This document shows positions 6,766 to 60,108 of a stretch of DNA of 64,000 nucleotides, in pieces. How positions within the stretch are numbered: position 1 is the first letter of the stretch; each line of letters starts with the position of its first letter. The DNA lies in assembly GCA_030704615.1 (NCBI GenBank), contig CM060733.1:63488001-63552000 (forward strand), given 5' to 3'. This DNA is from Takakia lepidozioides. Its lineage: Eukaryota > Plantae > Bryophyta. The position numbers and the translations under genes are program-made. Under the pieces are notes generated by a model. It was not told the origin of the DNA and made no database searches. It was given only the letters and a program-made list of their open reading frames with translations.

Positions 6766-7418
6766 GTCCTAACCATGATGGCCGTTTTGGGATTGCATAC
6801 ACAATTGAACACTAGACTTGTTGAGGCTTTCTGTGCTGCCTGCGCTGTGTGTCCGATCTAGGTCGGGTCCATTCTCGCTTGCACACTCGTGATACAGGTT
6901 AGAAGACAAACACAGATTACTCGCTCAGACGACGGCGAGGAGATGACCAAGACGTAAATTTTTGACATGTGCTGGGAAGTGCAGTGGCAAGGCTTCCAGA
7001 GCGGCCACCCTCTTCTTTCGGTGACGGAGAGAGAGATGATGTGTCCCTGGAAAGAACAGAAGCCCAGAGACGAACAAAATGTGGCAGCAAATGATAGTTC
7101 ACAGCTATGCGTGATCCTTGAAGCTGGACGATCGTTTCCATATGTAGAGGAGTCTGCTGTGGCAATCGTTTCTTCAACCGGGGTTGCAAGTACACGGACC
7201 AAAACACATCTTTCTCTTTCTCACTCGCCGGCGGGGATGGCAGCATCTTCCCGCGTTTGCCTGCACATGCCCACTCCATACGCAAGGCATTGTCCTCTCG
7301 CTTCGGTCATGCGAGAGTCCTCGCGTCAGGCAGCAGACTAAAGGGCTGGGTTGTGGAGCTGAAAGCTGCATCCCCCTTGGCAATGCGCAGAGGACAGAGT
7401 CCCGTGCATATGGCGGCT

Positions 7419-8241
7419 ATGGCGCCTTCAGGGATGCCATTCAAATTAGGTAATAATACGAAACACTTCGCGGTTTCCTTTTTTGGGGTCGCTGTATTGT
7501 ATGTATGCGCCGTCGGATCCAGGCTCCGAATTGTCTTTTGCGCAATTCAGCAAAAACGAATGTACTGTGGGCAAAGAAGCAAGAAAGCGCACGGGATCAT
7601 TAGACTGGTGATCGATAACTGGTGATAATTGGTATATCTGGCGCGTAGGTCAATGCTGGAGCATGGAACTGCGGTGGCAGGAGTTCCTTAAAGATCCTTC
7701 ACAATGGTGGGACAGTAGCCTTGACACGGTGAGCTTTCTTCATGTATGATGAGAAGGAGTCCGAGGGAGTTTGACTGCACTCTTGAATGATCGTATTGTG
7801 TGGACTGGATTGTACCCCTAGTTGTTGAGTGGAGTTAGAATCTCGCTTTGCTCTGCAAAGACTGCTTTTACTGCCCGTGTAGCAGGATGTTCTGCCTGAG
7901 CAGGGCATGAAAGTAGGAGGCACAAGCTTTTCCCTGTGGCTGCTCAGCTGCTCCTTGGTGGTTTTCACAGAGCAGTCCAAAATCTCCAGACTACAGACAT
8001 AAACTGGCTTAGCATCAGTGTACGTTTGGACGTGTTCGACTGTTCCTCATTGTGTACAGTCCAATGGAGCCCAAAGTGACTTGCATGATGAAAGCTCCCT
8101 AGCACTCCTCCATAAAGCAACTTGTCAAAATGTTGATGCTGTGGGATTTTCGGGCACAAAGGGCTACTGTGGAGCATGGAGCAGAGCTGGCAAGATTTTC
8201 TTAAAGCTCCTTCACAATGGTGAGACAACCGCAATGGCAAG
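7419..8241 (+). pseudogene. Degenerate upstream exons of PPR gene A encoding OSB-type PDF motif 1 and the first half of motif 2
   Basis: The exon ending at 7728 reads WQEFLKDPSQWWDSSLDT|GTGAGC. Exon 7971-8241 begins CACAG|SSPKSPDYRHKLA* and ends WQDFLKAPSQW*DNRNGK|GTGTGG (TGA at 8221-8223). Confidence 0.7.
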
Positions 8242-8392
8242 GTGTGGCTTTCTTAATGTAAGACGTGAAGAAGTTTGTCCATTCTGCAAAAATGTAGGCT
8301 CTTCCTGTTGGTATCATGATTTGGTATTTTTCCTGGTGTTTACAAGGTGCTTGGGAGGGTCAGTGTGGTCTTAGGAGGCCGAGTTTAAATCT

Positions 8393-11300
8393 ATGGCTGC
8401 TCAGCTGCACCGCGGTGGTTCTCCTTACAGACCAATCCAAGATCACCTGACTACAGACACAAGCAACACACCCAAGCAGTCCTTTTGGGTTGATGGTCAG
8501 TTGAATCCGCCATGGGTGAAAGAAAAGCTAGCTACCTTCATGACACAAGTTCAAGGACAATGTGGTGAGGGCACCTTCTTCTTCAACACATTTCAGATTG
8601 TTTCCTCTCTTATAAGAGTCATCCCTATATCGTGTTGAATTCTGCAAGCTGGTTGGGTGGATCTCTGGTGGTTTGGAGACATTTTCACATGTTACTGTTT
8701 CAGCAGGAAAGTATCCAAAAACAAATAACAAAGACGAGGAGAAGCTTTGGAATGAATATTTTTCCGACCCCAGTCAATGGAGGAACAATCGGGGAAAAAA
8801 GGTGAATGCCTGATAGATTACAGAGAGAAGCAGACAACAAGATGCATTGCAAAGCTTTTTAAAGCACATTTTAACAGTCTTGGGAGCAATTCAGCATCGG
8901 AGCTAGTGTGTGATAAGTAGGGTTGGGGTGTTTGCTAGAACAAATCTAGGCTCTCATTGTTAGCTGCTAGCAGCATGGTGAGGATCTATACATGACTAGT
9001 GCAGAGGCAGGGATAGCTGAAGGAGCAGGGATAGAGTGTGGGTCCAGATTCATCCAAGAGGGCCGGATTTCAAGCAGCACAAGATTTTGTCTGATTTCCT
9101 GTGGATTGATGGCCACAAGAAACCTTCATGGGTAGATGGTCAACTGGAAGCAGCAGCAGCGGTGGCAGCACAGTTGATAAAATCAGGCACCTCGACCATG
9201 ACCACAGCTTCCGAAAGACGACCAAGAGAGCGAGTCCACAAAGCCTCTTCTGGCACCTCTGGGCATGTGAGGATGCTATGTGAGGCAGGGCGACTGAAAG
9301 AGGCTCTGCAGACCTTAAACCAAGGAGGCATTTCAGCAGATTCGGATACTTATGTCTGTCTCTTGCATAAATGCATCAAGATGAAAGGCCTGGAAGCTGG
9401 AAAGCAGGTGCACACTCACATTATCCAACGTGGATTCAAGCCAAACATGTTTCTACACAACACCCTTGTCAACATGTATGTAAAGTGCGGGAGCATCGGG
9501 GACGCTCACGAAGTGTTCAACAGAATGCCTCAACGATGTTTGATCACGTGGAATATAATGATGGCAGGATTTACCAAGCATGGGTGTGGTAGGAATGCTT
9601 TGGAGACATACGACCAAATGATACAGGAAGGGGTGAAGCCCAACCACATCACGTTTGTTTGTGTTTGCAATGCATGTGCAAGCCTGGCATCCCTGGAAAA
9701 GGGCAAAGAGGTCCATGGTGACATCGTCAAAGTTGGAATTGTACCAGATGTCATTCTGAACACTGCGCTGGTGGACATGTATGCCAAATGTGGTTGCATC
9801 GAGCAGGCGAAGGAAGTGTTCGACAATATGGCTGAACGAAATGTGGTGTCATGGAACGTGATGATCGCAGGCTATGCACACCAGGGGCGCAGGATGGAGG
9901 CTTTGGAGACCTATGATCAAATGATGCGGGAAGGGGTGAAGCCTGACCACATCACGTTTGTTTGCGCTTGCAATGCATGTGCGAGCCTGGCAGCCCTGGA
10001 AAAGGGCGAAGAGGTGCATGGTGACATTGTCAAAGCTGGAATTGTACCAGATGTCATTTTGAACAATACCTTGGTGGACATGTATGTCAAATGTGGGTGC
10101 ATCGAGGATGCAAAGCGAGTGTTCCATCATATGGCTGAACGAGATGTGGTGTCATGGAATGCGATGACCGCAGGATATGCACAGCAGGGGCGCGGGATGG
10201 AGGCTTTGGAGACCTACGAGCAAATGATGCAGGATGGGGTGAAGCCGAACCACATCACGTTTGTTTGCATGTGCAATGCGTGCGCAAGCCTGGCAGCCCT
10301 GGAAAAGGGCAAAGAGGTGCATGGTGACATTGTCAAAGCTGGAATTGTACCAGATGTCATTCTGAACACTGCCTTGGTGGACATGTATGCCAAATGTGGG
10401 TGCATCGAGGATGCAAAGCGAGTGTTTGACAACATGGCTGAACGAAATGTGGTGTCATGGAGTGCGATGATTGCAGGATATGCACAGCAGGGGTGCGGGA
10501 TGGAGGCTTTAGACACTTATGAGGAAATGATGTGGGAAGGGGTGAAGCCCAACCACGTCACGTTTGTTTGCATTTGCAATGCGTGTGCGAGCCTGGCAGC
10601 CCTGGAAAAGGGCAAAGAGGTCCATAGTGACATCATCAAAGCTGGAATTATACCAGATGTCATTCTCAACACTGCCCTGGTGGACATGTATGCCAAATGC
10701 CAGAGCATTGACAATGCAAAGGGTGTTTTTGACAATATGGCTGAACGAAATGTGGTGTCGTGGAGCGTGATGATCGCAGGATATGCACAGCAAGGGCGCA
10801 GGATGGAGGCTTTGGAGACCTATGATCAAATGTTATGGGAAGGGGTGAAGCCCGACCACATCATGTTTGTTTGCGTTTGCAATGCTTGTGCAAGCCTAGC
10901 AGCCCTGGAAAAGGGCAAAGAGGTCCATGGTGACATCATCAAAGCTAGAATTGTACCAGATGTCATTCTGAACAATACCCTGGTGGACATGTATGCCAAA
11001 TGTGGGTGCATCGAGGATGCAAAGCAAGTGTTCGACAATATGGCTGAACGAGATGTGGTTTCGTGGAACGCGATGATCGCAGGATATGCCCAGCATGGCT
11101 GTCATAGGGAGGCCTTGCAGTTATTTGAAGGAATGCAATTGGAAGGATTCAAGCCGGATAGTATCACCTTTATATGTGTTCTCTCTGCTTGCAGCCACGT
11201 TGGCCTACTCGATGAAGGGAGACGCTACTTTGCTTCCCTGAGTCCAGATCATGGTGTCACTCCGACAGTAAAGCACTTCGGCTGCATGGTGGACCTTCTT

Positions 11301-11978
11301 GGACGTTCAGGGCAATTGGATGAGGCAGAGGACCTCATTAATAAAATGCCAGTCAAACCAGATCCTGTGGTGTGGAAGGCCTTGCTTGGTGCCTGCAGAG
11401 TCCATGGCAATGTGGAGATGGCTGAACGTGCAGCAACATCCATTCTCAAGTGGGATGAGCAGGATGCTGTGACTTATGTGTTGCTATCAAACATCTATGC
11501 CACAGCTGGCAGGTGGGATGATATTGCAAAGGTGAGAAAAATGATGAAGGTCAGAGGGGCTAGAAAGGAGCCAGGTCGCTGCTGCATTGAGGTTGGCAAC
11601 AGGGTGCACACCTTCGTTGTAGATGACAAGTTGCATCCCAAAATTAAGGAGATCCATGCTGAGCTGAGAAGATTGTCTAGGCAGATTAAGGAGGCAGGGT
11701 ATGTGCCTGACACGCACTTTGTATTGCATGATGTGGAGGAGGAGCAAAAGCAATTTTCTCTTTGCCACCACAGTGAGAAGCTGGCCATCGGTTTTGGGCT
11801 GATCAGCACAGCGCCTAGGACGCCTCTCCGTCTTATCAAGAATCTTCGGGTGTGTGGTGACTGCCACACCTCCACCAAGTTCATCTCAAAGATTGTTGGC
11901 CGTGCCATTGTTGTCCGGGACGATAACCGTTTTCACCACTTTGAAGATGGGGTTTGTTCTTGTGAGGATTATTGGTGA
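8393..11978 (+). CDS. PLS-class PPR-E1-E2-DYW C-to-U RNA editing factor with an N-terminal OSB-type PDF motif (gene A)
   Basis: Main exon 9048-11978: L-S + 5x(P1L1S1) + P2L2S2, E1/E2, KEPG box, HSEKLA, CGDCH, C-terminal DYW. Plausible in-frame GT-AG model 8393-8564, 8707-8801, 9048-11978. The true start is uncertain. Confidence 0.93.
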
Positions 11979-12392: not shown

Positions 12393-15300
12393 TCACCATA
12401 TTCTCTGTTGTGAAGCAGCAAGCACACTGAGTTGAAGGGCAGACAGTCTTTGTTGCTCGTACAGCTTCACGACTTGCTGGAGGTTTGCTTGCTCCTCTTC
12501 CAACCTACCCCGACATTACCAGAAAGATATAAGAGAGGCTTGATGACTACAGTTCCAAATTCTGGTACTGGTTTGATCGTCTGATCTCCCACAGGAATCC
12601 ATAATGCAAATGCCAAGGATAATCAAATAATCTTGAAACAAATGTTGGAAGTTCTCCACATTAAAACAATGCTGTTGCTTGAGATAATGTCTACGCAAAG
12701 GTCGGGTGACATTGCAGCTGCTAGATTTCTGGCATGCAGGGAACCTTCAACAATGAAAGTTCTCTCTTCTGCAACAAGATAAAAAATGTTCGTCAAACTT
12801 CCTTATATGACACAACACCAAGCCCAGCCTTACAAGGGGAATATTTGCAAGCAGATGTGGATTTACCTAGGAGATGCCATCTGACAGGATGGAGAATGTG
12901 CCTCTCAAATGGAATGGAGTCCTGGATCTTCTACATTGTACTTAGTCATAATTAACTTCTAGAATAGTAGGATATGTGCAAACCTTTGGCAAACCTGAGT
13001 CAGATTCTGTGAATAACTGCGTGCCTTCTGCAGCTTTGCAAGCAGCACCCGCTGCCCTTCCACCGCTGAAGTTCGCTTCTCCATCTCGACCTGCTATCAT
13101 CGTTATTTCCACGATCCTTGACTAGAACTGATCTTTGCTTTTGTGCAAGATACACACAACTAAAACAATAGCCTCCTGACAGATTTCAACAACATCTTCC
13201 ACCCTGTCTGCAGCGAGGGACTTTCAGAGGTCCAAAGAAGTCCAGGCAAAGATGACACAGGTGGAAACCTGAATGTGTGTAAATAAAACTTGATTTACTG
13301 TTTGACATCTTGAGTTGGTGATATTTGCCTCAAATAGTCCGGAAGTCTTCATACAGCTGGAGTTGCAAATTAACACAGCATCCTAAAGGATTGGATCAGT
13401 GCACCAATTGCAAACTGATCTCCTTTGTTGCCTCTCATATATGTCTCTCTCTCCCTCTCTCTTGTGCCATAAGGCTACGGCAAACAACGTCTTATGAGTA
13501 CAATCTCTTGTGCCATAATAAACCCTGGTGGGCACAAACCTCACAAAAGGCTCTGGGAGGTTAGTTTCCCATGGGGTCAATGGCCATAAGGCGATGGCAG
13601 GCCAACATTCGCAGGGAACGGTATGAGTACCTTGTGCCATAATACCCAAAGAGCAGGCGGCCTGAAGACAATATCCATTTTCTGATACAATGTCTGGGGT
13701 ATTCAGGACCATCAAGAACAGAGTCCCTGCACCTCAAGTTCACCAACCTTCAAATTCTCGAGGCTGAGCCTAAAGCCCTGGCCCTGTTGGGGTCTATTTG
13801 CTGGGCAGCTCGGGGTCTATGGCCACAAGGGTACGCCAAACAACGTCTTACTAGTAAATTCTCGTGCCATAGATCTCGACAGAATTACTGAAAGTGCAGG
13901 CTCAGCTGCATGTGTCACATCCATTGCAAGCTGGAGGGCTAAGAGAGCAGTGCTGCAGTTAACCTCACACTTTCTAGTTGATGCCACTGTCAGTCTATGA
14001 ATCCAATTACCCTTGTAATTGTCTTCAGCTTTCTGCCACTAATATGGGAATTTTGTGCAGAACGGAGGGACTGCATCCTATGGGACTGTCCTCAAGGTTG
14101 ATCAAATCAAACAATCTTTAGGAACAGTCAATAAGTAGTCTCCCTTGCTCTAACTCTTTGTTCATCTTTCTGGGCCTTGTCTCTCAGTGGATGCAGAACT
14201 GATCAGTTTGTCCCTCTCTTAGAACTCCTACAGAGGTATGATTTCACCCACCTTCAGTGCAGACTGGAGCTGCAAGAGTTTGGAGCGCACATCAGCAAGC
14301 TCTGTGGACTTTGCTTGAAGGGCTTGCTCACATTGCACTATGTTGGCTTGCAAGCTGTGCACTTTGGCAGTTTCCTCAGACAGATAGGTTTGCAGTTGCA
14401 AGCCACCTGCGGCTACATTCCAATTCCCACCGGTTTTCACCCATCAAATCGTAAAAGTTCCCTGCCACACACTTGCTCAAATCTGATCATAGGTCCCGCT
14501 GCATGTTCGACCCAAGAATGCATATCCTGCTAGCTTTGCCATGATTTAAGCAAACATCGTGATCACAAATCACTGCTCTTGTCTCATCAAATGGGACTTC
14601 TCCACAGAACTTCTAGTGTGGTGGATATGCATTCATTATGCCCCGAAAGAATGTCAAAAGTGCAGCTGGACACGCCTGCCTGCTGGCTCTCACAATGTGT
14701 GAAATCAATATCATGCCATTCCTTTTATTAGCCGAAAGCAACAGAACAAACACCCTTAAATTATAAGTATCAGGCATATATCCCTCTATCATTGCAGGAT
14801 GTAAATCACTGACCAAGCGGGACATATTCTTCACTTGTTTGCTCACTTGGAAAGGAAGATTGACTGCATCAAAGAGCTTACCAGCGGCATTTTCTACGAA
14901 GAGCACATCTTGCAAGGCTCCTTGCTCATGGACACCCCCAAATATTACCAGGCGTTGCCCAGCCCCAACCATCGTGTGCATCGACCGTCCATAAGCCCTT
15001 TGTTCACTTATATTATCCACAGCCATGTCATCCTTTGTAGATCCTATAATTGCCCACCGTTTCCACACTCGAGTATGGGTATCTAGGCTGTAGAAGTCCT
15101 CCAGATACATTCTTCCGTCATACCCTCCATACACAACTAGGTGTCTTCCAACAGCTGTAAGTGCATGCTGCCGTCTTGGCAAGGGCAAGTCTCCATACGT
15201 CTCGACACACTCCCAGACCATAAATTCAAGATCCAAGGAGTGTAGGTCTGCAAAATGCTCCTTCCCATTGTAACCCCCAAATACAAACATCTGTTTGTCT

Positions 15301-17855
15301 ACCACTGCTGCGCCATGGCCGCGGCGTGGAGATGGGGGCACCCCAACATAATCTGGAGAAGTCCATTTCATCGACAGCACATCAAGCATCCAGGTCTCAT
15401 TCAGGTGGCCCACACATGATCGATAGCCCCCAAACACAATCATGTATCGCCCATCTTGGGTCATACAGCAGGTGTGATGCGAGAAGGGAGCAGGCTGTGC
15501 ACCCATTCGCTGCCTCTCTGGCTGCGACCACTCACATGACACTGCAACCATGCCACCTTTCTCAAGTTCTTGGACCAAGCGTTAATGTCTTTATTAGGTC
15601 AATTCATGAGTTACATATATTTATTAATAGCGCTTGAGATAACTTTGAGAACTGAGAAGACGGGGACTAACATCCTTGATCAGAGAAGGTGAGCAAGGAC
15701 GTGTCAGCAAACTCATAGACCCCATCAAAGCCTCCAAAAAGCAGCATCTTGTTGTTGCCAAATGCGCAGGCACTGTGATTCCGCATACGTGGTGGGGATA
15801 CACTGCCTGGTGTCACTGAAGCTGCAGGTATCTTCCAGCACATTTCAACTATAACCTCAACCCCAGAACCAACCATGGATTTGTCAGTGATGTGCTCCAT
15901 ATACTCCATCACAACAAATACTTCTCCTTCCACAGAAAGCACGAAGGTCTCTTTGGTAGAGGAACTTTACATGGCAACCATCTCATCTCAGATGTAAGTT
16001 TGAAGCAACAGGGTATTAGATTCTACTGGCACTACAGACAAAAACTGAAAGGCAAATTCACTTGGACATATTTTCAAGGAAAGATTACATATTTCTGCTT
16101 CCACCAAATTCAGTTGGCTTCTTTCAGAACATCCAGTCAGAAGGGACTGCTGTGGGGCTCCCTAATGTCATCCAATTAAAACAGAAGGCCTAAAAGGATC
16201 TGATACCAAAGTTCTCGACATGCATACCAAATAGAACCTGCCACCAATATTTTGAGGATTTTAATTCATAGCTTTATACTTAAGTGCAAACAAGGTGCGA
16301 TTTAGTTACTTGATAGATGCCAGTTTTGCTGCTTGGCTCTGCCTAGTTCCTTGAACTCAAATCAAAATTGGAGACTTCAACTTCATCACGGAATAGAGCT
16401 TGAACACAGACAGACGCTTCTTGAACATAGGCATATATTGCTACAAGAAAAGTCTTGAGTGTCAGGCAGCCCTTGCATACCAGAATCAAAAAGTAGGACA
16501 TCATTGAAACATTCCCGCCCATTGTAACCCCCAAAGATTACAGTGTATGGTGCATTTGTCAGGCCGAGGGAAAGAGACACTGCAGAATGGCCCGCACGAG
16601 GGGCAGGTGACCACTTGCCCTCCATTACTGGCCAGCTCCACCTCAGATCCGCTGCAATCCACCACAGCTTCGGAATTAGATTTCAAGAGTTCCATCCGTT
16701 TATATGGATTCAAGTGGAGGTGGGAATGGCGTATCTTCACTAATGAGATTGAGCTGGCATGGTTGGCAGTGTGGCTATCACCTGTGCTTGGCATCATCAC
16801 TATTGATGTCAGATAAGCTATGTGAGCCCACCTTAGTAAAGCGTACCCAAGAATGGTTTCTCAACATATCCTTTGAGGATACAAGAAACGAAACCCTCTC
16901 CAGCTGGGCGACAATCTTCGTACCAAATTGCATGTCCCAGAGTCTGCCCGTCAGGTCTTTCTGATAAGAAGCATGGTCCTCGGTGGATCTCTCTCACAGA
17001 CAACAATGTCTTATTTGCAAGTTCGAGTGTTACTCAAGCTGGTCCAAACACGCTTGTGGCATCAAGAGCACAAGGGTGCAGGCATACTACAGTGGTCCAT
17101 TAGCCAACTGGTAGCAGCAGTGATACTTGCTTGGTGGAAATGGTAGACAAGGTTCCAGCATCCTTCTTCAAGCTTATGAATACAGCCCATGCACTGATTC
17201 TTGGAGCTACCACACAGTTAGAGAAATCTGATAAGGTTAACGATACATTGTGCAGTTGTACAGCATTTCTCAATGTGCTGAAAGCCAATGAATGAGCCTC
17301 CTCCCTTCCCGCTCCTGTGAGATAAGAAAATAGAGGACCAGCAACTGAGAAGAGTCTTCTGATCCGTTACCATCCAGGAAGCCCGAGGTCCATGAGGGGG
17401 TCCTGGCGATAGCAGCCCCTGCCATATCTATCATACGCAATCGCTCTGTTACAAACCCAGCCAAAAGCGTCTGCATCTCTCCGCACAGTTGGGTTCCACC
17501 AGCCAGCTGGGTTTCCAACACCTTTACCCTAGCCTCTGATTCATGAAGCTTTTCTTCAGCTTTTATCCTCCTGCAATCCAGCAGTCTTGCTGTCAAATTT
17601 GTTACTATTGTTGACAGTGATTAGTAACAAGTAGCATCATTCGTGGCTTTCTTCAAGGACCGTTGGCTTTGGGTACAACAGGCAAAACAAAAGTTGACAA
17701 ACTCACCGTCAGCTATCAACCCCACCCAACCCGTATCAGTTACCTGCAGACTGCAGTGTACGCAAGCCATGACGAGTAGAGCTTCTGCAGCCGCCTGTTT
17801 TTGGATTGCATATGTAAGCGCTTGACCCAACCCCAGCGTTCCTGCTTGCTCCGCA
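12393..17855 (-). CDS. Multi-exon Kelch-repeat (beta-propeller) protein with flanking coiled coils
   Basis: Kelch motifs PAPRAGHSA..VIFGGYNG (16.5-16.65 kb), PPRMRNHSA..LLFGGFDG (15.7-15.9 kb), PSPRRGHGA..FVFGGYNG and PLPRRQHAL..VVYGGYDG (14.9-15.6 kb). Coiled-coil exons at ~17.4-17.57, 14.24-14.41 and 13.0-13.09 kb. Likely last exon LEEEQANLQQVVKLYEQQ...IW* ends at 12393. The 5' end is uncertain (possibly ~18.09 kb, or joined to the upstream gene). Confidence 0.8.
13474..13870 (+). mobile_element. Intronic fragments of a LINE 3' end (same family as 49935-50340 and 54587-54960)
   Basis: Shared AAGGCTACGGCAAACAACGTCTTATGAGTACAATCT tail and GAGGCTGAGCCTAAAGCCCTGGCCCT segment. A short copy also lies at ~30158-30215 (-). 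Confidence 0.7.
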
Positions 17856-32166: not shown

Positions 32167-35100
32167 TCACCAGTAATCACCACAAGAACAAACCCCATCT
32201 TCAAAGTGGTGAAAGCGGTTAGCATCCCGTACAACAATCGCTCGGCCAACAATCTTTGAGATGAACTTGGTGGAGGTGTGGCAGTCACCACACACCCGAA
32301 GATTCTTTATGAGATGGAGAGGCGTCCTAGGGGCCGTGCTGATCAGCCCAAAACCAATGGCCAGTTTCTCACTGTGGTGGCAAAGAGAAAATTCCTTTTG
32401 CTCCTCCCCCACATCATGCAATACAAAGCGCGTGTCAGGCACATACCCTGCATCCATCATCTGCCCAGACAATCTTCTCAGCTCAACATGGATTTCCTTA
32501 ATTTTGGGATGCAATTTGTCATCTACAACAAAGGTGTGCACCCTGTTGCCGACCTCAATGCAGCAGTGACCTGGCTCCTTGCTAGCCCCTCTGACCTTCA
32601 TCATTTTTCTCACCTTGGCACTATCGTCCCACCTGCCAGCTGCGGCGTAGATGTTTGACAGCAACACATATGTCGCAGCATCCTGTTCATCCCACCTGAG
32701 AATAGATGTTGCCGCACGTTCAGCCATCTCCACATTGCCATGGATTCTGCAGGCACCAAGCAAGGCCTTCCACACCACAGCATCTGGTTTGATTGGCATT
32801 TGATTAATGAGGTCCTCTGCCTCATCCAATCGTCCCGCACGTCCAAGAAGGTCCACCATGCAGCCAAAGTGCTTCACTGTTGGGGTGACACCATGATCTT
32901 GACTCAGGGAATCAAAGTAGCGTCTTCCGTCATCCAATAGGCCAACGTGGCTGCAAGCAGAGAGAACACATATAAAGGTGATACTGTCCGGCTTCAAACC
33001 TACCATTTGCATCCCTTCAAATAGTTGTAGGGCCGCCCTGTGACAACCATGCTGTGCATGGCCTGCGATCATCGCGTTCCACGACACCAAATCTCGTTCA
33101 GCCATATTGTCAAACACTCCCTTTGCATCCTCGATGCACCCGCATTTGGCATACATGTCCACCAGGGTATTGTTCAGATTGATATCTGGTACAATTCCAG
33201 CTTTGACAATGTCACCATGGACCTCTTTGCCCTTTACCAGGGCTGCCAGGCTCGCACATGCATTGCAAACACAGACAAACGTGATGTGGTTGGGCTTCAC
33301 CCCTTCCCGCATCATTTGCTCATAGGTCTCCAAAGCCTCCATCCCATGCCCATGCTGGGCATATCCTGCGATCATCGCGTTCCATGACACCACATCTCGT
33401 TCAGCCATATTGTCAAACACTCCCTTTGCATCCTCGATGCACCCACATTTGGCATACATGTCCACCAAGGTATTGTTCAGAATGACGTTTGGTGCAATTC
33501 CAGCTTTGACGATGTCACCATGGACCTCTTTGCCCTTTTCCAGGGCTGCAAGGCTCGCACACGCATTGCAAATGCAAACAAACGTGATGTGGTCAGGCGT
33601 CACCCCTTCCAGCATCATTTGCTCATAGGTCTCCAAAGCCTCCATCCCACACCCCTGCTGTGCATATCCTGCCATCATCACGCTCCACGATACGACATTT
33701 CGATCAGCCATATTATCAAACACTACCTTCGCATCCTCGATGCACCCACATTTGGCATACATGTCCACCAGAGTATTGTTCAGAATGACATCCGGTACAA
33801 TTCCAGCTTTGACAATGTCACCATGCACCTCTTGGCCCTTTTCCAGGGTTGCCAGGCTCGCACACGCATTGCAAATGCAAACAAACGTGATGTGGTTGGG
33901 CTTCACCCCTTCCTGTATCATTTGCTCATAGGTCTCCAAAGCCTCCATCCCACGCCCTTGCTGTGCATATCCTGTGATCATCGCATTCCATGACACCACA
34001 TCTCGTTCAGCCATGTTGTCAAACAGTCCCTTTGCATCCTCTATGCACCCACACTTAGCATACATGTCCACCAGGGTATTGCTCAGAATCACATCTGGTA
34101 CAATTCCAGCTTTGAAGATGTCACCATGGACCTCTTTGCCCTTTTCCAGGGCTGCCAGGCTTGCACATGCATTGCAAACGCAAACAAACGTGATGTGGTT
34201 GGGCTTCACCCCATCCCGCATCATTTGCTCATAGGTCTCCAAAGCCTCCATCCCACACCCCTGCTGTGCATGGCCTGCGATCATCGCATTCCATGACACC
34301 ACATCTCGTTCAGCCATATTGTCAAACACTACCTTTGCATCCTCGATGCACCCACACTTGGCATACATGTCCACCAGGGTATTGTTCAGAATGACATCTG
34401 GTACAATTCCAGCTTTGACAATGTCACCGTGGACCTCTTTGCCCTTTTCAGGGGTCGCCAGGCTCGCACACGCATTGGAAATGCAAACAAACGTGATGCG
34501 ATTGGGCTTCACCCCTTCCCTAATCATTTGATCATAGGTCTCCAAAGCCTCCATCCTGCGCCCCTGCTGTGCATATCCTGCAATCATCGCACTCCACGAC
34601 ACCACATCTCGTTCAGCCATATTGTCAAACACTCCCTTTGCATCCTCGATGCACCCACATTTCGCATACATATCCACCAGGGTATTGTTCAGAATGACAT
34701 CTGGTACAATTCCAGCTTTGACAATGTCACCATGGACCTCTTTGCCCTTTTCCAGGGTTGCCAGGCTAGCACACGCATTGCAAACGCAAACGAACGTGAT
34801 GTGGTTGGGCTTCACCCCTTCCCACATCATTTGCTCATAGGTCTCCAAAGCCTCCCTCTCGCGCCCCAGCTGTGCATATCCGGCAATCATCGCGCTCCAT
34901 GACACCACATCTCGTTCGGACATACTGTCGAACACTCCCTTTGCGTTCTCGATGCACCCACATTTGGCATACATGTCCACAAGGGTATTGTTCAGAATGA
35001 CATCTGGTACAATTCCAGCTTTGATGATGTCACCATGGACCTCTTTGCCCTTTTCCAGGGCTGCCAGGCTCGCACACGCATTGCAAACGCAAACAAATGT

Positions 35101-36383
35101 AATGTGGTTGGGTCTCACCCCTTCCCGAATCATTTGCTCATATGTCCCCAAAGCATTCCTATTACACCCATGCTTGGTAAATCCTGCCATCATTATATTC
35201 CACGAGACCACACATCGTTGAGGCATTCTGTTGAACACTTGGTGAGCATCCACGATGCTCCCACACTTAACATACATGTTGACAAGGGTGTTACTTAGAA
35301 AAATGTTTGGCTTGAATCCACTTCGGATAATGTGAGCGTGCACCTGCTTTCCAGCTTCCAGGCCTCTCATCTTGATGCACTTACGCAAGAGACACACATA
35401 AGTATCTGAATCTGCGGAAATGCCTCCTTGGTTTAGTGTCTGTAAAGCCTCTTTCAGTTGCCCTGCCTCACATAGCATCCTCACATGCCCAGAAGTGCCA
35501 CAAGAGGCTTTGTGGACTCCATCTCTTGGTCCTCTTTCGGGAGCTGTGGTCATGGTTGAGGTGCCTGATTTCATCAACTGTGCCCCTACTGCTGCTGCTT
35601 CCATTTGACCATCTACCCATGCAGGTTCCTTGTGGCTATCGATCCACAGGGACCCATAGGTGATGTTGTTTTTGAAATGCAGCCCTCTTTGATGAATCTG
35701 GACCCACACTCTATCCCTGCTCCTTCAGCTATCCCTGCCTCTGCACTATTCATGTATAGGCCCTCGCCTTGCTGCTAGCAGCTGACAATGACAGCCTAGA
35801 TTTGTTCTAGCAAACACCCCAACGTAAATTATCACACACTACTCCCGATGCTGAATTTCTCCCAAGACGTTAAAACTGTGCTGGGGAGAGAGAGGATGAC
35901 AATTGCCAACAAAGCTTTGCATTGCATCTTGTTGTCTGCTTCTCTCGGTAATCTAACAGGCATTCACCTTTTTGCCCCGATTGTCCCACCATTGACTGGG
36001 GTCGGAAAAATATTCATTCCAGAGCTTCTCCTTGTCTTTGTTATTTGTTTTTGGACCATTTCCTGCTGCCACATTGGCAGTAACATGTGAAAATCACTCC
36101 AAACCGATCCACCAAACGAGCTTACTTGCAGAACTCAACATGGAAAATTAGGGACGACTCTGATAAGGCGCAAAACATGCAGAATTGTGTTGAAGAAGAA
36201 AGTGCCCTCACCACATTGTCCTTGACCTTGTGTCATGAAAGCAGCTAGCTTTTCTTTCACCCCTGGAGGATTCGACCGACCATCAACCCAAAAGAACCTC
36301 TTGTGTGTGCTGCTTGTGTCTGTAGTCAGGCGATCTCGGAATGCTCTGTGAGGAGAACCAGCACGGTGCAGCTGAGCAGCCAT
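32167..36383 (-). CDS. PLS-class PPR-E1-E2-DYW C-to-U RNA editing factor with an N-terminal OSB-type PDF motif (gene B)
   Basis: Main exon 35697-32167: L-S + 7x(P1L1S1) + P2L2S2, E1/E2, HSEKLA, CGDCH, DYW. Upstream exon 36062-35968 encodes LWNEYFSDPSQWWDNRGKK|GT. Exon 36383-36212 is in frame. The true start is uncertain. Confidence 0.93.
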
Positions 36384-36531
36384 AGATTTAAACTTGGCCT
36401 CCTAAGACCAAGCTAACCTCCCAAGTACCCTGTAAACACCAGGAGAATACCAAATAGTCATAGTAACAGGAAGAGCCCACATTTTGCAGGATGGACAAAC
36501 TTCTTCAGGTCGGACATTAAGAAAGCCACAC

Positions 36532-37379
36532 CTTGTGATTGCAGTTGTCCCGTCATTGTGAAGGATCTTTAAGAACCTCATGCCAGCTCTGCTCCTCCAT
36601 GATCCAAAGTAGACCTTTGTTCCCGAAAATTCAACAGCATCAACATTTTGACAGGTTCCTTTATGGAGGAGTTCTAGTTAGCTTTCAACAACATTCATGC
36701 AAGTCACTTTGGGCTCCATTGGACTCGACACAATGAGGAACATACGAACATGTCCAAAATTACACATATGCTAAACCAGCTTATGTCTGTAGTTTGGAGA
36801 TTCCGGACTGGTCCGTGAAAACCACCAGGGAGCAGCTGAGCAGCCACAGTCACAACCCTCCCCAGTACCTTGCAAACTCCAGGGAAAAGACCTTGCGTAT
36901 CCTACTTTCATGGAAGTACAACCTACGACACGGACAGTAAAAAGCAGCAGAGCAAAGCGAGATTCTAACTTCACTCAACAACTAAGGGTACAATCCGTCC
37001 ACACAATACGGTCATACAAGAGTTCAGTCAAACTGCCTCAGACTCCTTCTTATCCTACATGGAAAAAGCTCACCTTAACAAAGCTACTGTCCCACCGTTG
37101 TGAAGGATCTTTCAAGAACGCCTGCCACCGCTGCTGCATACTCCAGTGTTGACGTACGCGCCAGATATACCAATTATCGGCCTTGTCTAACGACCCCGTG
37201 CGCTTTCTTGCTCCTTTGCCCATAGGACATTCGTTTTTGCTGAATTGCGCAAAAGACAATTCGGAGCCTGGATCCGACGGCGCACACACACAACAAAGCG
37301 ACCCCAAGAAAGGAACCGCGAACTGTTTCGTGTTATTACCTAATTTGAATGGCATCCATGAAGGCGCCATAGCTACCAT
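36532..37379 (-). pseudogene. Upstream exons of PPR gene B with partly degenerate PDF motifs
   Basis: Open first exon 37379-37074 ends WQAFLKDPSQRWDSSFVK|GTGAGC. The next exon (36812-36532) has a mutated acceptor (CACGG) and reads SPESPNYRHKLV* and WHEVLKDPSQ*RDNCNHK|GT. Confidence 0.65.
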
Positions 37380-37707
37380 CTGCAAGAGACTCCGTCCTCT
37401 CCACAACCAGCCCTCTAATCCGCTGCTTAACGCGAGGCCTCTCGCATGACCGTAAAAAGCGCTTCAAATTTTTGTAGTGTATTGTGCGTGGCCTTATAGG
37501 GCATAATCTAACGCTTAGGCAGGCCGGGTGCCCGTAAGCAACTCTCCAGGCTGGCGCGGTGCGTTCCGCAGCGCCAGGCAGCACATACAACAGCCTCAAG
37601 CTTTAAATTAATGTTCTAAAAAACAAGCCGTTGATGAAGCCTCCGAGTCTATGTCTGACTCTGCACTAGTTGAGGGTGGAGGTGAAAGTGGTCTGAACCG
37701 AATACCT

Positions 37708-37785: not shown

Positions 37786-37978
37786 GTACTAAGAACGTGA
37801 CGAGCCCCAGGGGCGAGCCTGCGTTCCGGTAGGGTGGAACGGGCTCCACCGGACCCGGTGTCTCCCCACCGTTGATCAATAGTACTACAAACGGCTACGA
37901 TCCACTGGATATGGGCCGTGGATATGACACATATATGCGACAATCTGACGGTCTATATGAGAGCCTCTAGGTGACGCG

Positions 37979-50580: not shown

Positions 50581-53520
50581 TCACCAGTAATCCCCACAGG
50601 AACAAACCCCATCGTGGAAGTGGTGAAATCTGTTGGAATCCCGTACAACAACTTCTCGCCCAACAATCTTCGAGATGAACTTTGTGGCCGTGTGGCAGTC
50701 ACCACACACGCGGAGGTTCTTGATGACCTGGATAGGCACCCCAGGGGGAGTGCTGATCAGCCCAAAGGCAATGGCCAGCTTCTCACTGTGGTGGCAAAGC
50801 GAAAATTCCTTTTGCTCCTCCTCCACATCATGCAATACAAAGCGTGTGTCACGCACATAACCAGCCTCCTTCATCTCCCAAGCCAATCTCTTCAGCTCCA
50901 CATGGATTTCCTCAATTTGCGGATGCAATTGTCTTCTACAGTGAATGTATGAACTTGGTTGTTGACCTCAATGCAGCTGCGCCCTGGTTCCTTTCTGACA
51001 CCTCTGTCCTCCATCAGTTTTCTCACCTCGGCTTGATCGTGCCACCTGCCCGCCGCAGCATAGATGTTCGATAGCAGCACATAAATTGAAGCCTGCTGTG
51101 GATCCCACTTGAGGAGGCATTTTGCTGCATATTCTGCGAGCTCCACATCACCATGAATCCTGCAGGCACTGAGCAAAGCACCCCACACCGAAGCACCTGG
51201 TTCGACGGGCATATTTCTAATGAAATCCTTTGCATCATCCAATAGCCCTGCACGGCCAAGAAGGTCTACCATGCAGCCAAAATGCTCCACTGTAGGAGCG
51301 AGGCCATGATCTGGACTGATGGAATCAAAATAGTGTCGGCCTTCGACCACTAGGCCCACATGGCTACATGCAGACAGGACAGATGTATAAGTGAAGCTGT
51401 CCGGCCTCAAGCCTTCCTGTTGCATTTGTTCGAATAGTTGGAGGGCCTCCCTAGCACACCCATGCTGACCATATCCTGCAATCATGGTGTTCCATGAGAC
51501 CACATTCCGTTGAGCCATATTGTCAAACACTTGACGCGCATCCTGTACGCTTCCACATTTGGCATACATATCAACAAGGGCAGTCTCCAGAATGGTGTCT
51601 GGGTCAACTCTACTTTTGCTGATGTCAGCATGGACCTGTTTGCCCTTCTCCAGTGCTACTAGGCCGGCACACGCACTGAGAACGCAACCGAACGTCACTT
51701 TGTCGGGTGTCAACCCATCCTGTTGCATTTGCTCATAGATCTCCAGAGATTCCCAACCACGCCCATGCTTGGCATACCCTGCAATCATGACATTCCATGA
51801 GACCACATCTCGTTGAGACATTCTGTCAAAAACTTGATGTGCATCCTTTATGCTCCCACATTTGGCATACATGTCCAAAAGGGTATTTTGAAGATTGATG
51901 TCTTGCATAATGCCAGTTTTGCTGATGTCAGCATGGATCTCTTTGCCCTTTTCTAGGGCTCCTAGGCGAGCACACGCATTAAGAATGCAAATGAATGTGA
52001 CTTTATCGGGTGTCACCCCTTCCTCTATCATTTCCTCATAGATCTCAAAAGCCTCCATACCACACCCCTGCTGAGCATATCCTGCAATCATGGCATTCCA
52101 TGAGACTACATCTTGTTGAGACATGCTGTTGAACACTTGACGTGCATTCTTTACGCTCCCACATTTGGCATACATGTCAGCAAGCGCTGTCTCAAGAACG
52201 ATATCTGGTGAAATTCCAGCTTTGATGATGTCAGAATGGACCTCTTTCCCCCTCTCTAGGGCTCCTAGGCTGGTACATGCATTGAGAACACAAATAAATG
52301 TGACTGTGTTGGGCATCAACCCTTCTTGTAGCATTTGCTTGTAGATCTCAAAAGCCTCCCGACCACACCCATGTTGAGCATATCCTGTGATCATGGCATT
52401 CCAAGAAACCACATTTCGATTAGCCATATTGTTGAACACTTTGCGTGCATCCTTAATGCTACCGCATTTGGCATACATGTTGACAAGAGCTGTCTCCAAA
52501 ATAACCTCTGGCGCAATTCCAGCTTTGATGATGTCACAATGGATCTGCTTGCCCTTTCCCAGGGCTCTCAGGCTGGCACACGCATTCAGAATGGAAATGA
52601 ACGTGACCTTGTCCAGCATCACCCCTTCCTGTTGCATTTGATTGTAGATTCGTAAAGCTTCCCTACCACACCCATGCTTAGCATATCCTCCTATCATTAT
52701 ATTCCAGGTAAACAAGTTTCGTTCTGGCATTTCCTCAAACACTTGGTGTGCATCCACCAAGCTTCCACACTTGGCGTACATATTCACAAGGGTGTTGAGT
52801 AGGAAGATGTTTGGCTTGACTCCACTTTGGATAATGTGGGTATGCACCTGCTTTCCCTCCCCTAGGCATTTCCTCTTGATGCACTCCTGCAAGATATGGA
52901 CATAGGTATCCGAGTCTACCTGAATGCCTGGTTGGTTCAAAATGTGGAGCACTTCCTTCAGTCCTCCTGCCTTACATAGTTCCCTCAGATCCCCGTAGGT
53001 GCCAGAAGAATTCCTGTTGACTCCCGCTCTTGTTGCTCCTTCAAAAGCATTGACGGAGAAGGTGCTACTCTTGCCGCCAGTCTGATGTCCAACAAATACC
53101 TGAGTCTGCTTCGACTCTGTCATCCTACCTGCCGCAGGCAGGTATCGTCTCGCACAATTTAAGGGTTCCAACAATGGATTTAATTTTTCAGCTACCTCTC
53201 GCTTCACCCAAGGACGATTCAACCAAACCTCCATCGAAAGGCCCTCCTTTGTGTGCTTATGTCTGAAGTCTGGTGATCTCGGACTTTTCTGTAAGACCAG
53301 CATGTTGAGTGGGAACCCTTAAGTCATCAGCAACACAATACCTGTTCAACTTTTGGCCTGGAGCTCCAAGCTGTACATCCACATAAAAACAATCGCCAAA
53401 TGCCCGACCGTGTATCATGGCAGCTACCTCTCCCTGCACCCAAGGAGGATTCAACCAACCCTCCATCCAAAGGACCTCCTTTATGTGGTTCTGTCTGAGG
53501 TATGGTGATCTTGGAATTTT
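50581..53520 (-). pseudogene. PLS-class PPR-DYW gene C with a 1-nt deletion early in the DYW domain (pseudogene, E+-type allele or assembly error); N-terminal PDF half-motifs
   Basis: Exon from 53288: KSPRSPDFRHKHTKEGL..., L-S + 4x(P1L1S1) + P2L2S2, E1/E2, [23 protein letters not shown] at ~50929 versus GAAGACAAATTGCAT in gene D. The intact HSEKLA/CGDCH/DYW continues in another frame (50928-50581). A second PDF half-exon starts at 53520. Confidence 0.85.
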
Positions 53521-54586
53521 CTGTAAAACCACCAGTAGGAAGCTGACTTTGAACTTTTGATTTCTTCAACTTTGAACATGCTCAAACAACATGTGCTCTT
53601 CAACACGGAAGTGCCAGTCTGTTTGATTGCTTGTCACCTGTGCCATTAGCTTGCAGCAAACTCAAGCCCTGTGAGATAATAATCCTTGAAAATGACACTG
53701 CTTGAACAACACAAGATGAAGCCACCAGCATGAAGGACGGATTGTCAACCAACGGACACCCCAAAAAAGCTTGTGAGCCATGCCTGCACTACCCCTCTTC
53801 TAGTGTACAATCCAAAGTAGAATATAGCAGCTTGGGAAGACAAGGTTGAGTAGCAAAAAACTCATGGCTGTCGTCTACCTCTCGCAAAGCTCTCACCGTA
53901 GCTTACCAGCTTTCCCGATATCACACTATGGTGATTTTCATTTCGTTATATTACATGCCTGCGAATGAAAAAAAAATGTGGACGCGTTGCTGAAGCAAGT
54001 GTAAATTATGGTGTCACTTGACCCCTAAGGGCTATCGGGAATGTGCACACCGTTGTGACATCCAACATGTGGTTTGGTTGTCCTGTGGACAATGATTGTT
54101 GGCTCAAGGCCCGTGAATCTCCAGATTCTACGCATTTCCTTTATTCTACAGAATGAATGGGAGCAGCATAACATTCTAGACTCTCATATTAGTCTAGACT
54201 CTCTGGAGTGTGTCAAGTGATGGTTGATGGGGACGAGGCCTTCACAGTATGCGGCAGATTCATGGGCCAGGCTGTGAAGCTGAAATGGAGTTGCAGCTTG
54301 GTAATGCTGGGTCCAAGACGCTTGCAAGTGATGTCTATGACCCCTCCCAAGCCTGGAAGAAAACAGAAGAAAGGTATAGGCATCTAACTCTTTGCGTGTT
54401 TTTGTTACGTCTTCTAAATTCTCTTTCTCCCATCTTTTGGTGAATGGCCAGCCACATCACCAACACTGCCCACTACCATAGCAAATGAATAGGAGTATTC
54501 CAGTTCCGTGCTCAGAGTTGTGGACACCCAGAACACCTATCTGGTAGGCAAGCTAGTGCACTGCCCTCATAACCATACATAGAGAA

Positions 54587-57129: not shown

Positions 57130-60108
57130 AGAAGTCCAAGATTACCAGACTTCAGACATGCATGCAGAAAGAAGGCCCTTTGGATCGAGGGTTGGTTGAA
57201 ACCTCCTTGGGCGGATGCAGAGCCAGCTGCCAGGATACTAGATCGATCACAATCTGGTTATGTTCCACATTATGGTCAAAGGACAGAGTCTGGGAAGACA
57301 CATGCTGTGGACACATTTAAGTCTCACCTGCAATTTGCCTGCCTTAAAAGACCAACAAAAGGAGCCAACATCAACTGTTCTGGGACTTGTGGGGATGTGA
57401 GGACACTATGTAAGGCAGGACGACTGAAGGAGGCTCTGCACATTTTGATCCAAGGAGGCATTCAAGCAGATTCAAGTACTTATGTCTGGGTGTTGCAGGA
57501 GTGCATCAACATTCGAGGCCTAGTAGAAGGAAAGCTGGTGCACGCCCACATCATTCAAAGTGGATTCAAGGCAAACACCTATCTACTTAACACCCTTGTC
57601 AACATGTATGCCAAATGTGGGAGCGTGGTGGATGCACGTCAACTGTTTGACAAAATGACTGAACGAGATCTATACACATGGAACATGATGATAGCAGGAT
57701 ATGCCAAACATCGGTGTGGTAGGGAGGCTCTACATATCTATGAGCAACTGATACAAGAAGGGGTGAAGCCAAACAGGGTCACACTAATCTGTGTTCTTAA
57801 GGCATGTGCCAGCTTAGCAGTCCTGGAAGAGGGCGTAGTGGTCCATGCTGACATCATCAAATCTGGAATTGCGCCAGATATCACTTTGGAGACTGCCCTT
57901 GTTAACATGTATGCGAAATGTGGGAGCATAAGTCATGCACGTCAAGTGTTTGACAAAATGGCTGAACGAAATGTGGTCTCATGGAATGCCATGATAGCTG
58001 GATATGCTCAGCATGCGGGTGGTAGGCAGGCTTTAAAGATCTATAGACGAATGATACAGGAAGGGGTGATGCCTGACAGGGTGACATTCATTTGTGTTCT
58101 CAATGCCTGCGCCAGCTTGGCAGTTCTTGAAAAGGGGGCGGAGGTCCATGCTGACTTTATCAAGGCTGCAATTCCACCAGATACCATTGTGGATAATGCG
58201 CTTGTTGACATGTATGCCAGATGTGGGAGCATAAGGAGGGCTCGTGAAGTGTTCGACAATATGTTTCAACGAGATGTTGTCTCATGGAACACCATGATAT
58301 CAGGATATGGTCTGCATGGGTGTGGCAGCGAGGCTATAAAAATCTATGATCAGATGTTACGGGAAGGACAGGGGCCGGACAAGGTCACCTTCATTTGCAT
58401 GCTGAATGTATGTGCCAGTCTGGCAGCCCTTGAACGGGGCGTAGAGGTACATGCTGACATCGTGAAAGCTCGAATATTGCCAGATATCATTCTGGAGAAT
58501 GCCCTTGTGGACATGTATGCCAAAGGCGGGAGCATGAAGGATGCGCGTCATGTGTTTGACAATATGGCTCAACAGGATGTGGTCTCGTGGAGTGCAATAA
58601 TAGCTGGATATGGTCAACATGGGTGTGGTGGGGAGGCTTTGGAGATCTACGAGAAGATGAAAGGGGAGGAGGTGATGCCTGACAGGGTCACATTCATTTG
58701 TGTGCTCAATGCATGTGCCAGCCTGGTAGCCCTAGAGAAGGGCATTGAGGTCCATGCTGATATGATCAAAGCTGGAATTGGGCCAGATATGGTTCTGGAG
58801 AATACTCTCGTTGATATGTATGCCAAATGTGGGAGTATAATGCATGCACGTCGAGTGTTTGACAACATGGCTCAACGAAATGTGACCTCATGGAATGTAA
58901 TGATAGCAGGATATGGTCAGCGTGGGTGTGGTACAGAGGCTTTGGAGATCTACAAGCAAATGATACAGGAAGGCCTTACGCCTGATATGGTCACATTCAT
59001 TTGCGTTCTCAATGCGTGTGCCAGCCTGGCTGCCCTGGAAAAGGGCATAGAGGTGCATGCTGATATCATCAAAGCTGCAATTGGGCCAGATATCATTCTG
59101 GAGACTGCCCTTGCTGACATGTATGCCAAATGCGGGAGGATGAAGGATGCACATCAAGTGTTTGACCAGATGGCACAAAGAAATGCAGTCTCTTGGAATG
59201 CAATGATTGGAGGCTATGCTCAGCAGGGGTGTGGTAGGGAGGCCCTTCACCTATTTGAAGAAATGCAACAAAAAGGCTTCAAGCCGGACGGTGTTACCTT
59301 TATTTGTCTTCTCTCTGCCTGTAGCCATGCAGGCCTAGTGGATGAAGGCCATCGCTACTTCGCTTCTATGTGTAGTGATCATGGCTTCACTCCTACAATG
59401 GAGCATTTTGGCTGCATGGTGGACCTTCTTGGCCGTGCAGGGCGATTAGATGAAGCAGAGAGCTTCATTGACAACATGCCAATTGAACCAGGTGCTGTGG
59501 TGTGGGGGGCCTTGCTTGGTGCCTGCAGAATTCATGGCGATGTGGAGCTAGCTGAGCGTGCAGCAAAATGCCTTCTCAAATTGGATCCACAGAATTCTTC
59601 CACGTACGTGCTACTATCAAACATCTTTGCTGCAGCAGGCAGATGGGACGAGCAAGCGAATGTGAGAAAAATGATGCAGGACAGAGGTATCAGAAAGGAA
59701 CCAGGACGCAGCTGGATTAAGGTGGACAACAAGGTGCATGCATTTGTTGTAGAAGACAAATTGCATCCACAAATTGAGGAAATCCATACTGAGTTGAAGA
59801 GATTGTCTAGGCAGATGAAGGAGGTCGGGTATGCTCCTGACACACGATTTGTATTGCATGATGTGGATGAGGAGCAAAAGGAGTTTTCTCTTTGCTGCCA
59901 CAGTGAGAAGCTGGCCATTGCTTTTGGGCTGATCAGCACACCCTCTGGAATGCCTATTCGCGTCATCAAAAACCTCCGGGTGTGTGGTGACTGCCACACA
60001 GCCACCAAATTTATCTCAAAGATTGTTAAGCGTCTGGTTGTTGTACGGGATGCCAACCGATTTCACCACTTCCAAGATGGGGTTTGTTCCTGTGGAGATT
60101 ACTGGTGA
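57130..60108 (+). CDS. PLS-class PPR-E1-E2-DYW C-to-U RNA editing factor with an N-terminal PDF half-motif (gene D); upstream exon(s) not located
   Basis: Acceptor CTGCAG|RSPRLPDFRHACRKKALWIEGWLKPPWA. L-S + 5x(P1L1S1) + P2L2S2, E1/E2, KEPGRSWI, HSEKLA, CGDCH, DYW. Uninterrupted frame. Confidence 0.93.
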   Translation, partial: RSPRLPDFRHACRKKALWIEGWLKPPWADAEPAARILDRSQSGYVPHYGQRTESGKTHAVDTFKSHLQFACLKRPTKGANINCSGTCGDVRTLCKAGRLKEALHILIQGGIQADSSTYVWVLQECINIRGLVEGKLVHAHIIQSGFKANTYLLNTLVNMYAKCGSVVDARQLFDKMTERDLYTWNMMIAGYAKHRCGREALHIYEQLIQEGVKPNRVTLICVLKACASLAVLEEGVVVHADIIKSGIAPDITLETALVNMYAKCGSISHARQVFDKMAERNVVSWNAMIAGYAQHAGGRQALKIYRRMIQEGVMPDRVTFICVLNACASLAVLEKGAEVHADFIKAAIPPDTIVDNALVDMYARCGSIRRAREVFDNMFQRDVVSWNTMISGYGLHGCGSEAIKIYDQMLREGQGPDKVTFICMLNVCASLAALERGVEVHADIVKARILPDIILENALVDMYAKGGSMKDARHVFDNMAQQDVVSWSAIIAGYGQHGCGGEALEIYEKMKGEEVMPDRVTFICVLNACASLVALEKGIEVHADMIKAGIGPDMVLENTLVDMYAKCGSIMHARRVFDNMAQRNVTSWNVMIAGYGQRGCGTEALEIYKQMIQEGLTPDMVTFICVLNACASLAALEKGIEVHADIIKAAIGPDIILETALADMYAKCGRMKDAHQVFDQMAQRNAVSWNAMIGGYAQQGCGREALHLFEEMQQKGFKPDGVTFICLLSACSHAGLVDEGHRYFASMCSDHGFTPTMEHFGCMVDLLGRAGRLDEAESFIDNMPIEPGAVVWGALLGACRIHGDVELAERAAKCLLKLDPQNSSTYVLLSNIFAAAGRWDEQANVRKMMQDRGIRKEPGRSWIKVDNKVHAFVVEDKLHPQIEEIHTELKRLSRQMKEVGYAPDTRFVLHDVDEEQKEFSLCCHSEKLAIAFGLISTPSGMPIRVIKNLRVCGDCHTATKFISKIVKRLVVVRDANRFHHFQDGVCSCGDYW

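Follow-up and report, generated by a model that had tools for sequence, protein, structure and literature searches.

OSB-type PDF motifs ahead of PLS-DYW genes in Takakia lepidozioides and their counterparts in other seed-free plants

Here, we analyze a 64,000-nucleotide stretch of the genome of the bryophyte Takakia lepidozioides (assembly GCA_030704615.1, contig CM060733.1, positions 63,488,001 to 63,552,000; referred to below as the window), which carries four PLS-class pentatricopeptide repeat (PPR) genes: A (plus strand), B (minus), C (minus), and D (plus). Ahead of the repeat arrays of all four we find whole or half copies of the PDF motif of OSB proteins. Judged from sequence, the union of PDF, PLS array, and DYW domain is a real and ancient architecture, widespread among mosses, liverworts, clubmosses, and ferns. 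On balance, we favor the view that the window genes belong to an ancient family in which a cassette-like PDF is under purifying selection and would act as an anchor in intact members, and that the copies in the window are in decay.

The initial annotation had assigned the motif to the OSB type. This was borne out with a hidden Markov model (HMM) built solely from 82 PDF motifs of 43 OB-fold (OSB) proteins, which was applied separately to each exon of the spliced models. It matched ahead of all four PLS genes: the two halves of the PPR-proximal copy (module 3) scored 14.8 and 22.6 bits in gene A and 23.4 and 12.9 bits in gene B, and the 3′ halves of C and D scored 18.7 and 17.7 bits, respectively, whereas the best score over 30 shuffled windows was 0.7 bits. 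In the reverse direction, a profile of the window 3′ halves retrieved proteins with SSB plus PDF, including Amborella and Chenopodium OSB3; the gene D 3′ half as a query found no long relative. Neither Pfam nor PHROGs has a PDF model; the absence from Pfam, together with the intron that splits the motif, explains why the combination of PDF and PLS array has been overlooked.

The exon proposed at 8707-8801 (AG/GT borders, phase 1 in, phase 0 out) does lead, through the acceptor at 9048, in frame into the PPR open reading frame (ORF) of gene A, and gene B carries the equivalent pair (36062-35968 and 35697). In both genes, then, a PDF cassette stands in frame directly before the PLS array, as had been claimed, but each has three modules rather than one. 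The predicted intron within the motif is a phase-0 intron conserved in phase and position, at the same site as in a true OSB gene. At the starts of C and D, the PDF 3′ halves were recognized correctly, but there is no 5′ half and hence no complete PDF; a dedicated 5′-half HMM run over the whole window found no partner for either gene.

Two exons build each module: one for the 5′ half, entered in phase 1 and left in phase 0, and one for the 3′ half, entered in phase 0 and, where intact, left in phase 1. The position of the phase-0 intron relative to the motif columns is identical in the window, the fused genes of Sphagnum, Calypogeia, Diphasiastrum, and Adiantum, and a Kingdonia OSB gene; where checked, the 5′ halves have a phase-1 acceptor ahead of them. 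The PDF cassette is thus of the OSB type and frame-neutral: it can be gained, duplicated, or skipped without disturbing the reading frame, and this explains both its variable copy number and its fusion to other genes by exon shuffling. In one Sphagnum magellanicum PDF-PLS-DYW gene, the PDF is intronless, a retrocopy with the module intact; a Sinapis OSB gene likewise lacks the PDF intron.

PDF-PLS proteins of other plants

The existence of a PDF-PLS-DYW family is better supported by other species than by the window. With one intact PDF as the database query, 53 long proteins were recovered from Sphagnum, Calypogeia, and Diphasiastrum, all of them PLS-class PPR proteins, with one to three PDFs each (70-85 bits per motif). 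A complete HSE/CxDCH/DYW-type end is present in 23 of them, and in all but one (52/53) the first PDF is preceded by 37-148 amino acids that are mostly Ser/Thr rich and resemble a transit peptide. The profile search with the window 3′ halves added members from the fern Adiantum and from transcriptome proteins. Database proteins with PDF and PLS (with or without DYW) thus number 53 in Sphagnum, Calypogeia, and Diphasiastrum, with more in ferns, and the suspicion that the architecture might already be deposited proved right: it is present, unnamed, in public proteomes. One Diphasiastrum gene resembles gene A in that its upstream PDF modules have decayed and its PPR-proximal one is intact.

A second sample was drawn from proteins related to gene A, ordered mainly by similarity in the PPR region; the best of them are at most 52% identical to it. 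An intact PDF was found in 40 of 49 Diphasiastrum, 3 of 4 Sphagnum, and 2 of 3 Calypogeia proteins of this sample and in none of its 39 Ginkgo and conifer proteins. Across moss, liverwort, and lycophyte, identity is 58-66% in the PDF, compared with 13-21% in the preceding 30 amino acids. The ratio of nonsynonymous to synonymous differences (pN/pS) in the PDF is 0.18 among Sphagnum paralogues and 0.16 between Sphagnum and Calypogeia, compared with 0.43 for the next 100 PPR codons. Purifying selection on the motif, whose absence the initial annotation would have counted against its own proposal, is thus found in Sphagnum and Calypogeia but is largely lacking in the window genes. On an unrooted tree of the E/DYW region, the PDF label needs at least four changes; its history may comprise one origin with losses or several gains.

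Placed beside known systems, the family shares with PLS-class PPR-DYW editors (e.g., Physcomitrium PPR56) the PLS array, E1/E2, E+, a C-terminal DYW domain with HSE and CxxC, and an intronless PPR part, but it adds one to three intron-split PDF modules between the transit peptide and the first PPR. With the OSB proteins (AtOSB1-4, pTAC9), it shares a PDF of about 55 amino acids, tandem copies, and the phase-0 intron with phase-1 flanks of the Kingdonia gene, and it may share organelle targeting; unlike OSBs, the window genes lack an OB-fold, and their PDFs, here degraded, precede a PPR-deaminase instead of lying at the C terminus. The unnamed PDF-PLS(-DYW) proteins of Sphagnum, Calypogeia, Diphasiastrum, and Adiantum (e.g., KAJ7568880, KAH8950713, and KAI5061374) have the same architecture and exon layout as the window genes but carry intact PDFs (70-85 bits) under constraint, whereas those in the window are broken or relaxed. 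Fusions of RRM or MORF domains to PPR proteins likewise place an accessory nucleic-acid-binding or scaffold domain on an editing-factor family, although the domain differs (PMC13386178). That 2026 survey of domain fusions in editing factors never mentions PDF or OSB, and we found no description of a PDF-PLS fusion in the literature, most subscription papers being outside our reach, so that a prior mention is possible. The fusion is apparently an undescribed variant of PLS-DYW editors, both parts of which are known, and the window copies of it are degraded.

Condition of the modules in the window

No gene in the window retains the complete set of PDF residues (W, D, R, P-D-F, LW, and PxW). In both A and B, modules 1 and 2 are disrupted, by stops, a common +1 frameshift, and, in B, lost acceptors. 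Gene B keeps the same truncation of module 1 and the same frameshift in module 2 as A; in addition, the acceptors of its module 1 are mutated, and its module 2 has a TGA different from that of A. With regard to residues invariant in 114 PDFs, module 3 of A has lost the Asp of WWDNR and has a W>R change, and that of B has lost the Pro-Asp of the PDF signature. The PDF exons of the two genes resemble each other no more closely than do the introns (80-92% and 76-91% identity, respectively). The ratio of nonsynonymous to synonymous substitution rates (dN/dS) between the two genes is 0.13 for the DYW domain and 0.18 for the last 300 codons but 0.91 for the 3′ half of module 3, and over both halves of module 3 (53 codons, a small sample) pN/pS is 0.63, compared with 0.21 for the C terminus (Fisher P = 7e-4). 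Indels in the module 3 exons of A and B preserve the frame, and module 3 is therefore probably still translated and would then serve as a weak binder or a relaxed spacer. A and B themselves are probably ordinary editors or recent pseudogenes in which the PDF is weak or dead. The PDF 3′ halves of C and D (33 codons, a small sample) differ chiefly at nonsynonymous sites (synonymous rate [dS], 0.03-0.11; nonsynonymous rate [dN], 0.17-0.34), although dS between the DYW domains of A and D is 0.57.

These observations bear on one alternative in particular, namely, that the PDF is a passenger: a PPR retrocopy would have inserted within or downstream of an OSB-like gene and acquired its promoter and transit peptide, the PDF exons being included without having any function in the editor. 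This would suit the window well, with its stops, frameshifts, half motifs, and divergence at the level of introns, and the upstream modules of a Diphasiastrum gene are decaying too. It would also suit the intronless PPR parts, retroposition being a driver of PPR expansions in seed-free plants (PMC13386178). However, the PPR-proximal PDF is intact in moss, liverwort, lycophyte, and fern, its pN/pS of 0.16-0.18 lies below that of the adjacent PPRs, a neutral stretch would not last for more than 400 million years, and no OB-fold remnant is left between the peptide and the PDF. We therefore think it improbable that the PDF is only carried along.

The modules of the window appear to differ in their origins. 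Modules 1 and 2 and the halves in C and D are of the Diphasiastrum type, their best matches being fused-type PDFs of that genus, whereas module 3 of A and B is nearer to an OSB protein's own PDF: for all four of its halves, the C-terminal PDF of a single OSB protein (P0044) ranked first of 447 motifs. P0364, a cluster member of P0044, carries an SSB domain. Although the alignments are short, we lean toward the view that the ancestor of A and B took a new cassette from the species' own OSB gene and placed it behind older, decaying ones. The ancestor would have lost modules 1 and 2 before the duplication that gave A and B; the recaptured module 3 would since have relaxed, with the PPR-DYW part still under constraint.

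Transcript evidence came from two RNA-like runs, whose RNA nature is only guessed, with 2,761 and 1,012 contigs on 6900-9650 at 85% likeness. Fewer than 8% of these contigs reach 99% likeness, and a large paralogue family is therefore present. GT-AG joints in the contigs agree with the exon calls at 7449/7649 (from paralogous contigs), 8241/8431, 8564/8704, and 8564/8707. The 8801/9048 junction predicted by the initial annotation is not among the 15 joints listed (there are 178 more), but read depth fits an intron there: in contigs that are mostly paralogues, summed depth falls about 40-fold, from 14,658 to 379, in 8832-8923 and then rises, a pattern that suggests partial use of 8924-9015. At position 8781, nearly all contigs have a T, giving Trp in place of the Arg of gene A, which is thus more damaged than its expressed relatives. 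Judged by phase, joining exon 1 directly to 8707 would leave an open frame in A as well as in B; this joint was not seen in the contigs. In one contig, the end of the module 3 5′ exon is followed by the start of the same exon (8705-8801); its source may be a paralogue with a tandemly duplicated exon or a circular RNA.

What the PDF may do

A PPR array binds RNA with its N-to-C direction along the 5′-to-3′ direction of the transcript, and the DYW domain deaminates a C just 3′ of the footprint; an N-terminal PDF therefore lies far from the catalytic site. We propose that the four genes arose in a lineage-specific expansion within an ancient family of seed-free plants, whose members are built of a transit peptide, one to three PDF modules, a PLS-PPR array, E/E+, and DYW. 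In intact members, the array would select the RNA site and the DYW domain would deaminate C to U like any PLS-DYW editor. The PDF, at the 5′-binding end of the solenoid, would be a sequence-independent anchor for single-stranded nucleic acid, raising occupancy on nucleoid single-stranded DNA (ssDNA) or on the nascent transcript, a contribution that would be helpful yet dispensable. Such an anchoring role of the PDF, in proteins that otherwise edit RNA from C to U in the ordinary way, is likely for intact members. The ssDNA-binding activity of OSBs resides in the PDF, and these proteins prefer ssDNA over both double-stranded DNA and RNA (PMC4166229, PMC6451138, and PMC6963530).

Several points weigh against this proposal, in its general part or in the local decay that it assumes. 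Retrieval with one intact PDF selects by PDF similarity and so inflates apparent conservation, a bias that is lessened, but still present, with the PPR-ranked sample and pN/pS. In the comparison of A and B, the 5′ half of module 3 taken alone looks constrained (2 versus 2 changes). No full-length gene A transcript was seen among the contigs, which by their nature cannot prove one. A single PDF may bind weakly, OSB2 being a tetramer (PMC6963530). Finally, many working editors have no PDF, including those of seed plants and Physcomitrium PPR56, which edits alone in E. coli (PMC10482289).

A bolder, and to us doubtful, version of the anchor proposal is that seed-free plants possess a large, so far undescribed class of editors held by the PDF to nucleoid ssDNA or transcription bubbles and editing cotranscriptionally, the cassette having been recruited repeatedly (module 3 of A and B would be a second capture) and then lost in seed plants, where MORFs arose.

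The AlphaFold model of the PDF is a compact helix-strands-helix domain (predicted local distance difference test [pLDDT] of 88). No solved relative was found by sequence, and by fold the best hit had a Z of 3.6. Atlas clusters matching the fold comprise three PPR/DYW clusters (57-127 members) and one SSB cluster; an Atlas search by feature gave no result. The fold model also matches two clusters of hypothetical proteins of phages (Uroviricota), about 190 amino acids long, with template-modeling (TM) scores of 0.72 and 0.67; a PHROGs sequence search with the PDF gave no match. A phage link, which these model-based matches may hint at, would fit with other phage-derived organelle replication proteins.

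The models are also relevant to a structural or interaction role, in which the PDF would cap the N terminus of the PLS solenoid, mediate oligomerization, or bind RNA as an accessory domain, filling part of the role of MORF/ORRM proteins. In AlphaFold, the Calypogeia PDF and first PPRs are confidently placed through a short linker (pLDDT, 85-97; predicted TM score, 0.81). The taxonomic ranges are complementary, MORFs being known only in seed plants and PDF fusions being seen only outside them, and RRM and MORF fusions to PPRs provide precedents for an accessory domain (PMC13386178). On the other hand, the linker is 45-70 amino acids long and variable in the Diphasiastrum type and in the window, up to three tandem PDFs suit avidity for a polymer better than a cap, and the fused PDFs retain the invariant residues of OSB PDFs. 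The geometry also differs from that of MORFs, which act on L motifs along the PPR array. We consider a structural or interaction role of this kind unlikely.

The initial annotation had further raised the possibility of action on ssDNA, for which we find no support. Such a DNA editor would bind organelle ssDNA through both PDF and PPRs and deaminate DNA cytosine through the DYW domain. Designer PPRs do bind ssDNA by the same code, at lower affinity (PMC13041630), and a bacterial DYW-like toxin deaminates ssDNA (PMC11789416). However, the DYW domains of the window are canonical, being 70-78% identical to those of other plant editors and sitting on the tree among DYWs of PDF-less seed-plant proteins. 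Moreover, the PDF is at the end of the array opposite the DYW domain, half of the fused proteins have no complete DYW, and no trace is known of hundreds of proteins mutating a slow-evolving organelle genome. DNA editing is, in our view, very improbable indeed.

PLS-DYW factors have been taken to consist of a transit peptide, repeats, and a deaminase, and a conserved extra domain departs from that picture. The large share of sampled seed-free PLS factors with a PDF (40/49 in Diphasiastrum) would link editing to the nucleoid, and the PDF could serve as an add-on for synthetic PPR editors. The window genes show cassette gain, skipping, and loss and are not the ones for functional tests.

Gene layout and neighboring sequence

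The features of the four genes are collected in Table 1.

Table 1. Coordinates of the PLS-class genes and their PDF modules in the window
Feature	Position	Strand	Remarks
Gene A, first coding exon region, transit-peptide-like	7237..7449	+	Donor at 7450, phase 1
Gene A, PDF module 1, 5′-half exon	7649..7728	+	Open; phase 1 in, 0 out
Gene A, PDF module 1, 3′ half	7971..8012	+	Stop after 13 codons
Gene A, PDF module 2, 5′-half exon	8162..8241	+	In-frame TGA replaces a Trp
Gene A, PDF module 2, 3′-half exon	8431..8564	+	+1 frameshift, common to gene B
Gene A, PDF module 3, 5′-half exon	8707..8801	+	Open; phase 1 in, 0 out; WWD -> WRN
Gene A, PDF module 3, 3′ half	9048..9146	+	Open into PPR ORF
Gene A, linker, PLS array, E, E+, DYW	9147..11978	+	HSE, CxxC intact
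Gene B, upstream exons, three-module layout	35968..37455	-	About 83% identical to A, introns included
Gene B, PDF module 3, 5′ half	36062-35968	-	Open
Gene B, PDF module 3 3′ half, PLS array, E, E+, DYW	32167..35697	-	DYW intact; PDF signature -> LHF
Gene C, two tandem PDF 3′ halves	53193..53526	-	Halves at 53520-53422 and 53288-53190
Gene C, PLS-E array	50653..53192	-	DYW end coordinate approximate
Gene D, PDF 3′ half, PLS-E-E+-DYW	57130..60108	+	3′ half (57130-57219) behind phase-0 acceptor; PLS-E-E+-DYW intact

The ORF of gene A comprises 976 codons (PLS-E-E+-DYW) and ends at 11978. A domain search placed E, E+, and DYW after the PLS array in A, B, and D, in which the HSE, the CxxC zinc ligands, and the terminal DYW are intact. 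Gene C has no in-frame DYW: a 1-nucleotide deletion in E+ (about 50933) ends its ORF at 50892, and the zinc ligands and DYW follow only in a second frame. It is probably a pseudogene or a DYW-less E-type gene. Exon 1 of gene A is open for 64 codons from 7257 and is Ser/Arg/Ala rich (8 S, 10 R/K, 1 E, and 0 D); its first in-frame ATG is at 7383, the ATG at 7237 being one base out of frame. The transit-peptide-like frame of A (7257-7449) is truncated in gene B, and none was found for C and D within the window. There was no SSB match in the four window ORFs, and the upstream layout holds PDF exons only.

The PLS triplets of gene A (303 nucleotides each, 9480-11090) are 79-90% identical to each other, a likeness that points to recent internal duplication or homogenization, and the array of gene B has two triplets more than that of A. 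Pieces of a pyridoxal-dependent decarboxylase gene (PF00282) lie at 55779-56500, between the divergent C and D, where the missing 5′ exons of these genes would be expected. Similarity between A and B stops at about 37455, beside repeat-derived sequence. A near-perfect 78-nucleotide palindrome is present just upstream of gene B (37708-37785), with a partial copy at 37533-37574, and the 37530-37790 region has a 78-nucleotide match to 44955-45032. An ORF at 37979-38443 had no Pfam match at 1e-4. A Ty3/gypsy element with gag-like and integrase ORFs occupies 42.4-47.5 kb (42434-47547), and the window also contains an exon of a Kelch-repeat gene and, indicative of a plant whose sperm are flagellated, an IFT52 exon (14613-15578 and 27915-28331, respectively).

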